Source: Blastocystis sp. Blastoise
Taxonomy: Eukaryota > Protista > Bigyra: Opalinata
NCBI GenBank assembly: GCA_039096225.1
Contig: JBBPEB010000021.1
Span: 186,001-250,000 of the forward strand
Reading direction: 5' to 3'
Length of the DNA stretch: 64,000 bases
Translations under genes and position numbers: made by a program
Notes under the pieces: model-generated
What the model was told of the DNA's origin: nothing
The model's input: only the letters and a program-made list of their open reading frames with translations
Database searches by the model: none
Shown: positions 1,823 through 39,694 of the stretch, in pieces
Layout of the letters: every line of letters starts with the position of its first letter
Numbering within the stretch: the stretch's first letter is position 1

Positions 1823-2794
1823 TTATAATAATTCAATTTTATCTACAAGAATATTGAATATTGCAATACTACATTTACCCATACCTTCTGTATCCTTCTG
1901 AATACGCACATAACCATCTTCACCCCAATCAGATCCCCAAGAATTTTTGACAATCCAATACTTTATACCATTTTCTTCACCATATCCTACAGCTAGAACA
2001 GCATGATTCACATTATCATCACATTCAGTTATAATTCCTGATTTATAATGTTGCATAGCTGTTCCATCAAGAATAACAGATACTACAGACTCATTGAGCA
2101 TATTAGCGAGTGATTCTTCACCACCAAAACTAACTTGTTGAGTACTTATAACTTTAACAATCTTCTTACATTGATCAGATGCACATTCATTATCTTTTGC
2201 AGTATATGGATAATCTTTTTCTGAACATAATCCATTATCAGTCACATATTCCATACCATGATCTGTGCAACCTCCTTGACATCCATTGTTATGATAGGGA
2301 GCTATTTTAGAACAATCAATCAACTCTTGTTCTGAAAACTCAATCATTTCATTCTTCTTTTGATAATATGCACTTTCAACAGCTCCAGTCACTGAAAATG
2401 ACCAGCAACTACCACAATCACCTTGATCTTTCACTGGAGAAACGGCACCTTGTTGTCTCCAATCAATAGTTGATGCTAAAGTACCTTTATATACATAAGG
2501 AATAGTTTTCTTCATGTTTAAATAATGTGATCTATCTAAACAACCACAGAATTTTGCTTGAAACTCATCAGGAGTTAAATCTGTGAATTGATTAGCACCT
2601 TCTTTCCAAGATAATTGCTTTGAATTATGATATTCTATATCTCTCATATTTAATGAGAATACTTTTAATCGATATTGATATTCAAGATTTGAATAATTCT
2701 TGGAATGAATGATCAAATAATGATCAAATTCAGTTTGTCGAAGCAAGCTAGCATGTACAACAAGCAAACATATCAAAAAAATAATATATTTCAT
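1823..2794 (-). CDS. Cathepsin L-like papain-family (C1A) cysteine protease, intronless pre-pro-enzyme
   Basis: Signal peptide MKYIIFLICLLVVHAS (ATG 2794), ERFNIN- and GNFD-like prodomain motifs, catalytic QGDCGSCWSF, NHAVLAVGYG and KNSWG. Confidence 0.96.
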   Translation of the reverse strand: MKYIIFLICLLVVHASLLRQTEFDHYLIIHSKNYSNLEYQYRLKVFSLNMRDIEYHNSKQLSWKEGANQFTDLTPDEFQAKFCGCLDRSHYLNMKKTIPYVYKGTLASTIDWRQQGAVSPVKDQGDCGSCWSFSVTGAVESAYYQKKNEMIEFSEQELIDCSKIAPYHNNGCQGGCTDHGMEYVTDNGLCSEKDYPYTAKDNECASDQCKKIVKVISTQQVSFGGEESLANMLNESVVSVILDGTAMQHYKSGIITECDDNVNHAVLAVGYGEENGIKYWIVKNSWGSDWGEDGYVRIQKDTEGMGKCSIAIFNILVDKIELL

Positions 2795-3270
2795 GAATAA
2801 GAACAATATATAAAAGAAAAAAGAATAAAGACAAATAAGTATTCCTTGTGTACAGAGTTGAATTACCCTCCAAAAAGATAACATTGTGTTTTTCGTTATT
2901 TGTGGGGAATCCCTATCTTGAAAGACTTATTTATAATAATTTATTTTCAAGGTAAATTCAATTGTATTCACTATAATTTCATTTTATTTTGTTCAAGTTT
3001 ATACTATAAAGGAGAAACAATGAATAGAACATGAATAATGATTGGTAAGTCCATAAATAGAGATGCAACGTCATAGTTTCTCAGAAATTCAGATTCTATT
3101 TGATGAGATTCAGATAGAATAATCATGTATTGTAATAACTGAAATAATCTGAATATTGAATCACATGATCTCAAATCATATAACGAGGAGATACAATCTC
3201 ACCTCAAAAAAAACAAAGATACAAAAAAAGAAGAAACGTTTTTATATAAAAAATTTATCAAAGTTTAGTA

Positions 3271-8014: not shown

Positions 8015-10008
8015 TTAAATAGAAGAAGCAACTTTAGAAACAAAAAGCCATACAGTTGAACCAACGGTAACAAGTGCTCCTAAACCAATTAAGACTAAAT
8101 CAATAATCATGTCTTTCTTATCCTTATATTTTTCTAATTTAAAATGAATATAAGGAGGTAAAACAAAAGAAACAGCAGAACAAGCGAAACAACCAAGTAA
8201 TTGTATTAAAGAAAATAATATTTATATTAATATTATTATTCATATATTTTATGAATAATTATAGTGAAAATATATAATAATAATAAGTTTAAATATAATA
8301 ATAATAATAATAATATAATAAATATAAAGGATATTAAAAGAGACAATACCTCCAAGGTAGGGTAAGAAGGCGGCCATAATACAGACGGCGGCAAGAGATC
8401 CAGCACGCATAAGTATACGCTTATAATCAGTTACAAAGAACTTAGTTTCATCTATAGATATATATATTAGTCATTCATATAATAAACATAAACATAATAA
8501 TAAACATAAACATAAATATAATAATAATAATAATAATATCATATACTAGAATCAATCCATAATTCAATAGCCTTCATAGCAGGATAAACAGTAATAGGAT
8601 AAGATAACCAACAAACAATAGCAATACAAGCAGAGGAAATATAATAATAAATTGTAGTACATTGAATATTTTGTAGAATCATATCATATATACCAACTAT
8701 TCAAATAGTATATTATATAGTATATTATATAGTATATATATATATACAGGCATCATTAGAAAAGAAAATAATGGCAAAAGCAGCGAAAATAACGTAAAAG
8801 ATGACGCATCCAGCAAGAGATCCACCAAGTACCCAATCAAAATGATTTGTGTTCTTCATGTTATTCTATAAGAATAAATAAAATAAATATAATAATAATA
8901 AATAAAATAAACAGAATAAACATAATATAAACATAATAAATACTCTAGCAGAAGGAGCAATAAAAGCAACACATAAACAGAAACACATAGTACCCCAAAT
9001 AGAAGCATAATTAAATATATTTCCGAAATTAAAAGTAAGTTCATCTACATTGTCCCAACCATAAGTAATATCACCATAACTATTTTAAACATAAGTATAA
9101 GTATAAAAACATAATAAATTATAAATAAATATATATATATATAATAAATAAATATATATATATAATAAATAAAAATATATATATATAATAAATCAAAAAA
9201 ATTTATATAATAAATAAAAAAAATAATAATAACAGAATTTTTCTACATACAAAAAAAAACTATAATATATATATATATACATTAAAACAACAATACAGCT
9301 TACAATGAAGATAGCGCTACCAACAATAGATACAATACTAAGAGAACTATATATAATAATAATAATAATCATCATGAATATATAACAAATAAAAATACGA
9401 AAGACTTCTGAATAAAACAAGAGGAAGAGTAATTACAAAGAAAACACCAGCCCAAAGTTTAGGATCTCTGCCAAGAGTGAAACCAACTTTTTTCCATAAA
9501 TAACCAGATAAAGTTTTTTCAAATGTAATCTAAAACAATAATAAATAGATTAAAAAGCAAATGAAGATAACAGACAATAAATATACAACATAAGTAAGAC
9601 CAGAACCGAATAAAGTAACAACATAAATAGCTCCCATAATGAGAGTACCAAATTTAGGGAATGTTTTATCCATTAAAGTGATCCAAGGATCTTTCTCAGG
9701 ATCAGGACCAAAGAACCAGCTATCGGTTTGGCAAGAAAGAAGACGATGTTGACAAATAGTAATCCATACAACAGCGATTACGCCACAAATAATAGTAGGT
9801 AAAATACCAGCCTAGATATTTATATTCGATAATCATATTTAAATATTGTTATCTAACATACACCGTAAGCAGCAGCAGGAATGGCTAAAACACCAGCTCC
9901 AACACAAACTTTAACGAAATTGGCAATAGTCTAGAGAAGAGTTGTCAATATATATAAATATGTAAATATTATAAATACAGATATATCAGAAGTAGCAGTA
10001 TCCTTCAT
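8015..10008 (-). CDS. Amino acid/auxin permease (AAAP, Aa_trans) family transporter, multi-exon
   Basis: Spliced translation MKDTATSDIS/TIANFVKVCVGAGVLAIPAAAYG/AGILPTIICG...SYPITVYPA...LGCFACSAVSFVLPP...VASSI*; TM1 motif GAGVLAIP and many hydrophobic helices. Confidence 0.88.
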
Positions 10009-30953: not shown

Positions 30954-34750
<3,797 letters not shown>

Positions 34751-35736
34751 ACAGAATTATTCACTATTTCTATGAAGACAATCTTCTTCTTTTATATAAT
34801 TTAATAAATACACTTTATAAATATTTATGTTATTTATAATTCTATTGTAATCCTTTTTATCTATATCTATACAATTCTCTTATAGCTTTTTGTTTTCTCA
34901 TGTTAATTCATTATAATTCTTTATACACATTTTTTATCAAATTACAAAAAAAAATGCATTTTCTTAAATCAAATAAGGTTATCACTATACACATTTAGAA
35001 TTCAGCTTTATATCAGGAATTCAAAACCACACTCATCAATAAACACTCGATGTTTCAGTCCAAATGACCCATTTTAATCAGCCACTTTTGACTATCTATC
35101 ACTAATTCTGTCTCTCATATATCTATTGGTCTTCATAATAAAAATAAATAAAAATACAGCAATCTCTTTGATCAATATTGAAAGGACACAATAATGACCA
35201 AAAATATCAAAATATCTTTATTCAAATAGTCCTATTGTGATAAACACTCTGTTGAATTATTCTATAACTCTAAAATCTATTTGTATACTCATAAAAACAC
35301 TTTCAAAGCATATGTTATCAAATCACACGAATTGTACTTCTTATTTTCATCATTCCTTCTTCTACATAATCTCATTCTAGTTGCGAGTGTTCGTTTCGTT
35401 GTTCTATAAATAATGTACTTCTATAGCTAAAACACACCAGACACATTCATCAATCGAATAATCATTAACAAATACGATATGCTTTATATAGATCATGAAG
35501 TCTTTGTACATTAAAGCAATGAATAATACAAGTCAAAGGACTGTATTCCACAATCCAAAAAAGAGAAAATACTAAAATGAAACTACCAAAAAAAAAGACG
35601 TTAGCAAACATTTTACTAAAGATTACTGTTTTTAGTATACTTTTAGTGTTCAATCTTATTTTATAAAATGAAAACCTTTTTTCAATCATAATTATTTTTA
35701 ATCAATTAATTTTTCTTAAGCGCTACTTTATTTATA

Positions 35737-35838
35737 ATGGCTATCAGTACTATTGCTCTTATTACTATTGGTTGCACCGTTGGTGGATTCCTTTTAGATC
35801 AAGTTGGTCGTTGTTTAATTGATAAAAGCAAGAAGTAA
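35737..35838 (+). CDS. 33-aa hydrophobic microprotein A (MAISTIALITIGCTVGGFLLDQVGRCLIDKSKK)
   Basis: ATG-TAA ORF, GC-richer than flanks; shares CxVxGxxLx[QE]VGxC and Lys tail with ORFs at 37795 and 39037; TGTTTGTT at 35976. Confidence 0.72.
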   Translation: MAISTIALITIGCTVGGFLLDQVGRCLIDKSKK

Positions 35839-36087
35839 AATTGCCTTACTTTGCTTTAGCTTATTCATTATTTGCTTGGATCTTTCTTTTTCTTTTATTC
35901 TTATTTAATTTTAATCTTCTTTTAATTTTATTTTATTTGCAATTATCATAAAATGATTGTATTATTCTTCATTCTTGTTTGTTCTAAATACTCTTTTTCC
36001 TTTGTAATTCACTACATATATCATAAATCATTACTCATTTTTCTATAAATCATACTACAATGAAAGTATTAATTCCATAGCTACTAT

Positions 36088-36363
36088 TCACATTTTGAGA
36101 AATACTATTTTAATTTTGACGAAAACAAAGCCATGATAGATCAATCTTATCACATATATAATAATAATAGAAATAGCTATCATAAAAGTAATCAATTCAT
36201 ATGAATCTATATATATATCAAAAAGGGAGATAGCACAAAGTAAGTAAAAAATCATGCCAACATATGAGTCCCTTTTTGTGGCGCTCAGACTAAGAGTAGT
36301 CATGAAAAATATATATAAAACAGTAAAAAGAGCCTTATTATAGCATATATTAATATCTGACAT
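36088..36363 (-). CDS. Possible 91-aa small multi-pass membrane protein
   Basis: Intronless ATG ORF with about three hydrophobic segments, not microsatellite-derived; could be chance in AT-rich DNA. Confidence 0.25.
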   Translation of the reverse strand: MSDINICYNKALFTVLYIFFMTTLSLSATKRDSYVGMIFYLLCAISLFDIYIDSYELITFMIAISIIIIYVIRLIYHGFVFVKIKIVFLKM

Positions 36364-37794
36364 TGACGAATCATTTTTTAATAATTGTTTTCATTCTTAG
36401 ATAATCGATTTAGGCATTTTAATTAACATAAGAAATCAGTACAGTTACCATTTATGAAGGATTCCACTTTAGAGCATCATGAGTTGTTTTGAAATAACTT
36501 CGCTATATGATTTTTCAGTTGGCATTTATTTAAAGAAGAATAAATAATGATTGTAATCACATGAATTCATTAGATTCTATCCATAAATGTCTTTCATCAA
36601 GTAAACACATGTTCCTAATTACAAAAAATATATTATTATGAATAAATAAATAAAAAAAGAATTCAAAAAGAAATTAGATAAATTGAAAATAATTTTTCTA
36701 ATAAAATTTCTCTGAATCATCGTTTTTGAGGTTTTTATATATATACTTTACTTCTTTTATTCATTTTATAATATTAAAGAATTCTTGACTCTTCCAATAT
36801 GATACAAGAGAGTTCTAATGTGTTTTTAATTAATTATATGAAAATAATAATCTACAAATTGATTTACAAAACTGTCTAGTTAGATGAAAACGCACTTTTT
36901 AATAGGCGCAAAGCAAATTCATAAAATTACTATGCACGAGAATACTTTTAAAGAACATTAAAGAGAATTACTTCGAAAACAAGTATCTACAACAACAACA
37001 AATATCAGAAAACGTATATTGACAACTAGTTATACTCTTTAGATATTTAATTTCATTTTTATATTGAAAGTTGTCTATTGAAAGTCTTTTCAATTCTATT
37101 TTTTTCTACTCATTATTCTAATGATTCATGTATAACAATAATATAGTTATTCATCACATAACCAGTTCAACGACAGTCTCATATTTTATGCAATATTAAA
37201 ATAAAACTCCAGCTACAGTCTTACAAATCTATTAGCAATATACCCAAAGTGTTGATATATAAAACAACTCAATTACAAACAGGAATAGTAAAAAGAAACA
37301 TTATAAGAATAAATGATCCTGCTGATAACACTAATGCTCTTCAAAACACATTGAAAGTCATGTATACATATAATAACTAGAAAAGAAAGAAAGAAGAAAG
37401 AGAATGAATTCATGGAGTCTTTCTTTGCTTGTTCTTTTTAGATTCCAAATATAGCCTACACAACAGAGATAATTGACTTATCAATATCAATACATAAGAA
37501 GAAGAACTTTGTGTTGTCTTTTAATCCACAATCAATCACTAATTATATATTTTTTTGGTTTTCTGTACATTGATGTCATGATATATCGATCTTCACAATC
37601 CATAGAAATACCTCAAATATCCAGATTACTAACAAGAAGCATCAATAAATTTTGAAATACGTTTATTCACTATATCGATTCTTTAGTGAATCTCTCTTTT
37701 TAGTACACTATTAAATATTATTATATTTTTATATTTTGTATAATTATTTATTTAATTAAAAGTTTTACTTGTTTTAATAAAATTAAATTTTAGA

Positions 37795-37893
37795 ATGGAT
37801 GATAATACTGTATTATACATTGTTGGCGTTGTTTGTGTTGTAATTGGTACTGTTCTCTCTGAAGTTGGTGGATGCGTTGGCAAGAAGAAGTAA
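37795..37893 (+). CDS. 32-aa hydrophobic microprotein B1 (MDDNTVLYIVGVVCVVIGTVLSEVGGCVGKKK)
   Basis: ATG-TAA ORF duplicated at 39037 with only two synonymous differences; TTGTTTTGTT at 38013. Confidence 0.8.
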   Translation: MDDNTVLYIVGVVCVVIGTVLSEVGGCVGKKK

Positions 37894-39036
37894 TTCGAGT
37901 TTCTTAAGATACATTTAGTTCGTGGTTCATTAATCTAAACTATGAATTTATTTCTAGAATATTTTGTTTTTTATTAGCTAATTTATCAATTGCTTCTTAT
38001 GATTTACTTATTTTGTTTTGTTTTGATTATTTTATATAAAAACGATTACTTTATCATGTAGAAACATTGAATTATATACATTTAAGAAGACTATTCTTTT
38101 TAAAATTCAAATTGGAATACATATAAAAAAGGTTTGAGAAATGTGTAATTCATAGAGATATTATAATCAAAGTATAAGAATTTGTTTTTCAAACACTACA
38201 AAAGAATATAACATAGTAAATTTACAAAAGAATTCATTGTAGTGCATTATTATATAACAATATACACATTAGCCAGAAGGATAAGTGATACTATTATAGT
38301 TGAGAATAAGTTCCTTTTTATGAATCTTTATATAACACATTTCCAAAGAGTAAATTCATACCAAAACTTATATTTAAAATATGTTGCATAACAATAAGTG
38401 AATACAAAACAATTAACTAATGAGCAACGAAGTGATGATAGAAGAATTGATTAAAAACGTGTATGCTATTGAATAGAAAAGTTCCACTCAATTCAGTGTT
38501 GCTCTCTCATCAGTATAAGTTCTAATAGATGCTTCAGTGCTTATAAAGAAAAGTAAGGAAGATAAAGTATGGTTCTAAATGGATATTGAGTGAGTCCGAA
38601 GTTCTAATTCACATAAATTATGTTTTCCTTTCTATTTTGTCATGCATTCATTCTTTAGATGAATGAAATTAGTTTCAAATTTGCTTTGACATACATAAGA
38701 AAGAACAACTCAATTTCTATGAGTCTATATTTTGTTGATTCTACAAAATTCCCTTTTGAATCACTAAAAGTATGTATTGACTAAGTATTCACACCTAAAG
38801 ACGAGATAAACGTTAGGATATATCATAGTAGTTTGCAAGAGTCTATAAACAATAGAAACCGTCTTTAGTAAAAACTTATACCTGAAACAGAGGGATGAAG
38901 AATCTTTCGCTAAAAAAATCTTTTTTTAGTAAAATGAAAATGTTTTTAGTAATAATTATGTTTTGATTATGTTTTTATCCATAAATTATTTATTTAATTA
39001 AAAGTTTTACTTGTTTTAATAAAATTAGATTTTAGA

Positions 39037-39135
39037 ATGGATGATAATACTGTATTGTACATTGTTGGCGTTGTTTGCGTTGTAATTGGTACTGTTCTCT
39101 CTGAAGTTGGTGGATGCGTTGGCAAGAAGAAGTAA
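39037..39135 (+). CDS. 32-aa hydrophobic microprotein B2 (same protein as B1)
   Basis: Differs from B1 only at Leu7 (TTA/TTG) and Cys14 (TGT/TGC); TTGTTTTGTT at 39281. Confidence 0.8.
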   Translation: MDDNTVLYIVGVVCVVIGTVLSEVGGCVGKKK

Positions 39136-39694
39136 TTCGAGTTCAGCATATTATAATACTGCGCTGAATCAAAATATAAATACAAATATATAAATATATA
39201 TATTAATGCAATATTTTATTTGAATAATTATATTATTTCCTTTTCCAATTTATCAATTGCTTTCTTATGATTAATTTATTTTGTTTTGTTCAAATAGTCT
39301 ATATATGTTTGATAATAAAATGTGTGAATGATATATAAATGATGATTGATTTATAAAAATGAGTGGATTCGTAAAATAAAGCTTCATTGATCCATATTTC
39401 AAATCATATGAGAATGTATAGTTGAACATTTAAAAGTGAATGGATTATATAATGAGTAAAGAAGTGATTACTAACAAGTTAGAGTACATGATTCAGTGAA
39501 TTAGTTATCATTAAGAAGCTTTTTATAACAAAACAAAGGATAATATTTTATAAGCTAGGAAAGCAAATAATATAGCAACAAAAAATCAAAACCAGAGAGT
39601 AGAATATTGATGAATAAAAAGAAATAATCTGAATAAATCAAATTAATTATATAAATTATATTTATTTCTATTCAAAATCTAAAAATAAAATGAT

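Follow-up and report, generated by a model that had tools for sequence, protein, structure and literature searches.

Short open reading frames in a long intergenic interval of a tortoise-gut Blastocystis genome as likely genes for candidate membrane microproteins

Does an unusually long gap between two genes of a Blastocystis genome hold very small protein-coding genes of its own, and if so, what might their products be? We examined a window of 64,000 nucleotides (nt) from Blastocystis sp. Blastoise (contig JBBPEB010000021.1, forward-strand positions 186,001 to 250,000), and all coordinates below refer to this window. The source organism is a Blastocystis from the tortoise gut; the genome assembly comprises 34 contigs and 33.3 Mb, and the GC content of the window is ∼23%. 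The gap of ∼4.8 kb extends from the stop codon of the NSUN2 gene (34748-34750) to a minus-strand motif (39527-39535) that terminates the SET gene. It is unusually long because the median intergenic length in tortoise Blastocystis genomes is only 645 to 719 bp (PMC12129017). An earlier reading of the letters by themselves (here the sequence-only reading) had reported three short open reading frames (ORFs) on the plus strand of this gap, and our ORF listing contained all three, on the same strand and with the same positions and sequences. We named them gene A and genes B1 and B2, the last two of which encode one identical protein, B.

We consider it likely that the three ORFs are real genes. They would be stand-alone, intronless, unannotated protein-coding genes, each forming a unit of ∼290 to 310 nt that would consist of a ∼50-nt leader, an ORF of 32 to 33 codons, and a 3' untranslated region (UTR) of 120 to 146 nt finishing at a TGTTT(T)GTT box. 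RNA evidence came from one poly(A) metatranscriptome run labelled "gut metagenome," which represents a different strain and was used as contigs only (RNA-library contigs). The parts of the three units are as follows.

35690-35736, plus strand: leader of gene A, 47 nt, with no upstream ATG; colinear with an other-strain RNA-library contig
35737-35838, plus strand: ORF of gene A, 33 amino acids (aa), a predicted single hydrophobic helix and a Lys-rich tail; RNA-library contig over 35744-35878
35976-35983, plus strand: 3'-end motif of gene A, TGTTTGTT, 137 nt past the stop
37742-37794, plus strand: leader of gene B1, 53 nt, differing from the B2 leader at one position
37795-37893, plus strand: ORF of gene B1, 32 aa; RNA-library contigs over 37830-37995
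37980-38022, plus strand: conserved 3' box of gene B1, terminating in TGTTTTGTT (38014-38022)
38984-39036, plus strand: leader of gene B2, 53 nt
39037-39135, plus strand: ORF of gene B2, 32 aa, protein identical to that of B1; RNA-library contigs over 39030-39162
39247-39290, plus strand: conserved 3' box of gene B2, terminating in TGTTTTGTT (39282-39290)

Conservation, codon usage, and RNA coverage of the ORFs

The presence of short ORFs alone carries no significance in this AT-rich DNA. The ORF list held 59 ORFs of at least 25 aa in 6 kb, and an estimate from base composition gave a few chance 32-codon ATG ORFs per strand in 4.8 kb. We therefore looked at how these three ORFs vary and how they are composed. 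The B1 and B2 units align solely from position −53 to the TGTTTTGTT box, with 81% identity overall. Along this alignment, identity is 98% over the leader and ORF, insertions and deletions break up the central part of the 3' UTR, and the 43- to 44-nt 3' box is again conserved. The B1 and B2 ORFs differ at two codons (7 and 14), both times synonymously, and each of the three other-strain variants that the RNA library shows within the B ORFs is a synonymous change at a third codon position. All 5 of 5 substitutions are synonymous in total (P, ∼8e-4, with 0.243 as the synonymous fraction).

Codon log-likelihoods were best in the sense frame among the six frames of A, B1, and B2 alike, and this is the sole frame open in all three. 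Among the 213 small ATG ORFs of the window, the three ORFs ranked 9, 11, and 14 by codon score, with several of the small ORFs placed above them resembling exons of real genes (for instance, an IscA exon). Their per-codon scores (0.21 to 0.31) fell within the values spanned by the long ORFs of the window (0.22 to 0.53), and the remaining ORFs of the interval scored negatively. The GC peaks of the interval are the three ORFs themselves (0.37 to 0.42 versus ∼0.20 in the flanks), and the start contexts of A, B1, and B2 are alike, with A at −3 and G at +4. A 91-aa hydrophobic ORF on the opposite strand (36088-36363, minus strand) is probably no gene; it scored −0.155 per codon and had no RNA-library contig.

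RNA-library contigs are found on all three ORFs and on the first 40 to 100 nt of each 3' UTR, and none lies on the two spacers between the ORFs (35948-37728 and 38003-38961). No splice joints were found in the RNA-library contigs over the interval. Contigs and fragments run colinearly with the window through the possible splice acceptors upstream of A and B2; for instance, one adaptor-bounded fragment begins at 39014 and continues through the "tttag" directly before the B2 ATG. The contig over A matches the window from 35690 on and is unlike the window before that position. Whether it stems from conservation or from transcript limits, this coverage singles out the ORFs as special.

Relation of A to B, searches for relatives, and other origins of the ORFs

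A and B can be aligned without gaps over the core C-x-V-x-G-x-x-L-x-[QE]-V-G-x-C, and their full alignment has one small gap near either end and ten invariant columns, including both Cys residues, spaced 12 residues apart (C-x12-C). The alignment bore out two features reported previously, the shared ungapped Cys core and the Lys-rich C termini of both proteins. The Smith-Waterman score of the pair was 42, which was reached by 0.14% of composition-preserving shuffles (p = 0.0014), and A and B were mutual best matches among the small ATG ORFs of the window. Because of this score and mutual best match, and because the genes share strand, neighborhood, length, Cys spacing, and a Lys tail, we regard A and B as probable, though not proven, paralogues. 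Genome searches found no further paralogue in the 33-Mb assembly besides A, B1, and B2. Of the "amplified family" proposed by the sequence-only reading, what stands is a small probable family, with just three copies in the genome.

We searched widely for relatives. An exact look-up among 15 billion proteins returned no match to A or B, and a profile of A plus B gave 0 matches against 1.84 billion protein representatives, a library that is unfiltered by length and seems to include this genome's annotated proteins. No gene model's coding sequence includes the A or B ORFs, because no library protein of any length contains A or B. As far as the exact look-up and the library searches show, the published tortoise-isolate annotation, which was made with BRAKER3, StringTie, and Mikado (PMC12129017), has no gene model for A, B1, or B2. 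A word-indexed search with the 45-aa (B) and 42-aa (A) open frames as queries yielded no candidates, and the best value in the ESM Atlas was 0.77, under any useful level. Scanning Pfam-A at E values up to 10 returned DUF3185 alone, below threshold (E = 0.019; 15.4 bits versus a cut-off of 25.3), and NCBIfam had no match for A or B. Sequences of the PDB gave only immunoglobulin heavy chains at E > 0.3, with no chains of the oligosaccharyltransferase (OST) complex among the matches. JGI metagenome contigs gave 209 pattern matches, 0 of them confirmed, and the Rfam 15 covariance models had no match in 34800-39600 on either strand at E values up to 1. In the literature, we found no paper joining Blastocystis and small ORFs. 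The sequence-only reading had not recognized the family, and our searches agree, in that the protein, family, structure, and RNA libraries we searched all came up without a relative. Among these libraries, the A/B family is an orphan.

Several observations weigh against the reading of three stand-alone genes. The RNA-library contigs do not reveal strand, transcript ends, or level, and conservation, not the limits of transcripts, may account for part of their pattern. In the other strain, the contig over A extends at least 255 nt upstream of the A leader, where a longer transcript is possible. RNA-library contigs also lie on 39236-39500, beyond the B2 3' box and between the convergent motifs at 39282-39290 (plus strand) and 39527-39535 (minus strand), and one of them diverges after 39388; possible sources of this coverage are read-through, an extended 3' UTR, and DNA present in the library. 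In B, one antisense frame contains no stop and has its wobble positions in common with the sense frame, so that the synonymous-substitution test cannot separate the strands for B. We consider an antisense reading of B less likely, as its codon score is lower, it has no ATG in B1, and it is closed in A. The identity of B1 and B2 could come from recent gene conversion. BLASTP gave only a weak match between A and B (8 residues; E = 0.094), and A and B failed to find each other in the genome search.

Two other origins of the ORFs have to be weighed against the interpretation as genes. One is that the ORFs arose by chance within conserved noncoding units, such as short noncoding RNAs or regulatory DNA, and that B1 and B2 are identical through recent duplication or gene conversion and not through selection on a protein. 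Such units would fit the frequency of short ORFs in the interval, the weak BLASTP similarity, the lack of a homologue in the searches made, and a leader and 3' box that are conserved along with the ORF. We nevertheless think this explanation unlikely in view of the exclusively synonymous substitutions, the sense-frame codon scores of all three ORFs, the GC peaks exactly over them, and the lack of an Rfam match. Moreover, A and B keep the same length, Cys spacing, and tail despite a nucleotide identity of 37/81, which is highest at second codon positions (17/27). The other is that a longer unannotated gene uses the ORFs as its terminal (perhaps alternative) exons, which we hold to be quite improbable. 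The start codons of B and A are preceded by an AG at distances of 1 and 18 nt, respectively, an in-frame extension to these AGs is possible, and the upstream reach of the other-strain contig over A would suit a longer gene. However, the RNA contigs have no joints and pass colinearly through both candidate acceptors. The loose sequence upstream of A in that contig adjoins a non-AG and resembles the window's upstream bases, and a 30-mer from it is absent from both the window and the genome; considered as an upstream exon, it reads instead as the diverged flank of the other strain. There is no coding-like sequence upstream in the gap, where the other ORFs score as noncoding, and NSUN2 has its own stop codon. 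The sequence-only reading had allowed that the ORFs might turn out to be last exons of a longer known protein; A and B are in no protein of the 1.84-billion library. A small hydrophobic ORF of the window that does look like such a last exon lies at 8015-8110 (minus strand). We considered this 31-aa ORF as a fourth microprotein and rejected it. It has a coding-like codon score and follows an acceptor-like "aaattag," with a membrane-protein exon upstream (8249-8410), and it appears to close a transporter-like gene as its final exon.

Predicted proteins and their possible role

If A, B1, and B2 are genes, their products would be single-pass membrane microproteins with a predicted helix. Both A and B have a uniform hydrophobic run of 17 to 19 residues, with 2 to 4 neutral or acidic residues before it and 11 to 14 residues ending in Lys after it. 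The best 17-residue Kyte-Doolittle means are 1.93 for A and 2.65 for B, and the net charges are +2 and 0, respectively. AlphaFold2 predicted one helix in protein B (residues 3 to 29; mean pLDDT, 85). The conserved alignment columns Cys14, Gly18, Leu21, and Gly25 follow an i, i+4, i+7, i+11 spacing and so form a stripe of mostly small residues along one side of the helix. A homo-tetramer prediction of B scored 0.02, a value that carries no weight on binding either way.

The positive-inside rule would place the short N terminus, which is neutral or acidic, outside or in the lumen; the Gly/Val/Ile helix of 17 to 19 residues would span the membrane, and the 11- to 14-residue Lys-ended tail would lie in the cytosol. 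Insertion would presumably be posttranslational, because so short a peptide leaves the ribosome before the helix emerges. The Cys/Gly/Leu/Gly stripe is a putative face for helix-helix packing. Because this stripe looks like a packing face, we propose that the protein may have an accessory or regulatory role, as a small subunit that associates with copies of itself or with a larger membrane protein. In membrane proteins, a Cys between the membrane helix and a basic tail is a usual place of S-palmitoylation, and the second conserved Cys, which directly precedes the Lys tail and would sit at the cytosolic edge of the membrane, is a candidate site for this modification. For the reading as a whole (stand-alone genes for N-out/C-in microproteins that use a conserved face of small residues for packing, possibly carry a palmitoylated Cys, and serve as membrane subunits), we see about an even chance of being right.

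This interpretation keeps part of what the sequence-only reading had proposed for the proteins. Its description of Gly/Val-rich hydrophobic peptides with two conserved Cys residues and a Lys tail holds up, and their genes look real and unannotated, whereas the cationic antimicrobial part is weak: B has no net charge and A only +2, the hydrophobic run is uniform and anchor-like rather than amphipathic, and there is no separate signal peptide. A disulfide between the two Cys residues is unlikely, with one Cys mid-membrane and the other predicted to be cytosolic. The suggested di-lysine endoplasmic reticulum signal does not fit either. The canonical motif (KKXX or KXKXX) has Lys at −3 plus −4 or −5; B has Lys at −1, −2, and −3 with Gly at −4 and Val at −5, and A ends in D-K-S-K-K, with Ser at −3.

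One of the nearest known designs is that of the regulatory proteolipids of P-type ATPases, such as yeast Pmp1/Pmp2, sarcolipin, phospholamban, and FXYD proteins. These are 30 to 50 residues long, cross the membrane with one helix, carry a basic segment on the cytosolic side, and pack against a large membrane protein; some have a Cys in or beside the helix, which is palmitoylated in FXYD1. A and B are like them in having a single predicted helix of ∼20 residues and fewer than 60 aa. However, they match none of the corresponding Pfam models (sarcolipin, phospholamban, PMP1/2, FXYD), and the N terminus of sarcolipin and phospholamban is cytosolic, opposite to the orientation predicted for A and B. 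By analogy, the design of A and B resembles that of pump-regulatory proteolipids and other one-helix accessory subunits. There is also a likeness to bacterial type I toxins (Fst, Ldr, PepA1), KdpF, and AcrZ, in the size of ∼30 residues, the N-terminal hydrophobic helix, and the charged C-terminal tail. Unlike these small hydrophobic bacterial proteins, A and B are eukaryotic nuclear genes with the composition and the 3'-end motif of the host, and with respect to those families they had no NCBIfam match and, in Pfam, only the subthreshold match to DUF3185.

Two more specific identities for the products compete with an accessory-subunit role. The genes could be real and encode released membrane-active peptides, that is, leaderless antimicrobial or pore-forming peptides directed against gut bacteria. 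A small hydrophobic helix with a Lys tail recalls the design of bacterial type I toxins and leaderless bacteriocins, the gene is duplicated, and the organism lives among gut bacteria. Even so, we think released peptides very unlikely, given the net charge of 0 in B, a helix that is hydrophobic throughout and not amphipathic, the lack of a signal peptide or pro-region, and the lack of an NCBIfam or Pfam match. Least probable of all, in our estimate, is that A and B are highly diverged Ost4-like OST subunits, and we would be surprised to see this borne out. Ost4 (PF10215) has ∼36 aa and a single helix with its N terminus in the lumen and its C terminus in the cytosol, and its short acidic or polar N terminus is followed by Leu. 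A and B are similar in length, single helix, short N terminus, and predicted N-out/C-cytosol topology, and no canonical Ost4 was detected in the genome. They do not match PF10215 at E values up to 10, however, and stay short of its cut-off of 25 bits; no OST-complex chain was among the PDB matches. Further, the C-x12-C core of A and B, with its conserved Cys pair, and their Gly stripe are not known features of Ost4, and three copies would be unusual for such a subunit. A six-frame search of the genome for PF10215 gave 16 weak matches, none at the cut-off and A and B not among them. These weak matches are repeated 16-residue matches in several contigs.

Blastocystis is the commonest eukaryote of the human gut. 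If the ORFs are translated, a proteome about which little is known would gain an orphan family of membrane microproteins, and very small genes would be seen to lie hidden in long "intergenic" gaps of these genomes. The conserved small-residue face and the membrane-edge Cys offer handles for tagging, pull-down, and acylation tests through published Blastocystis transfection (PMC6395660), and the practical value will be modest as long as no function or partner has been found. A bolder idea, to which we assign a very small chance, is that A and B are lineage-restricted, strongly conserved, Cys-bearing proteolipids that form a self-assembled channel, or a released, leaderless membrane-active peptide, acting on the organism's own membranes or on neighboring bacteria. 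Should this hold, Blastocystis would have its first described peptide system of this kind.

The downstream motif and other features of the window

The TGTTT(T)GTT motif was found downstream of all three ORFs and of neighboring genes, as the sequence-only reading had said. The distance from the stop codon to TGTTTTGTT is 120 nt in B1 and 146 nt in B2. This 9-mer is enriched in the window, with 11 occurrences versus 1.44 expected and 0 of 100 shuffles reaching 11, and its sites lie downstream of genes (for instance, 1795-1803 on the minus strand, 28063, 31122, 38014, 39282, 39527-39535 on the minus strand, 49800, and 63462). The 8-mer TGTTTGTT by itself is not enriched in the window (6 versus 2.9 expected). 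The human-type downstream gene element was found not to be enriched in tortoise isolates (PMC12129017). The variant with one more T, which often lies at a greater distance from the stop, may have been overlooked in these isolates.

At the other end of the units, a AATTATTT word stands 47 to 53 nt before the ATG, at the start of the cross-strain colinearity of A (35690) and of the conservation between B1 and B2 (37742 and 38984). It may be a candidate start-site or core-promoter element; the word is common in AT-rich DNA, and coincidence is possible.

One of the genes with the downstream motif is a cathepsin-L-like ORF (1823-2884, minus strand), in which TGTTTTGTT lies 20 nt past the ORF. Cathepsin-L-like genes number at least 20 in the genome; three lie in tandem on contig C4 (961305-966805), at 89 to 100% identity, and copies occur at 17 further places. 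A cathepsin paralogue recorded for Blastocystis sp. Blastoise, WA158_001145, matches contig C4 with 100% identity. The copy in the window has 54% identity to these tandem copies.

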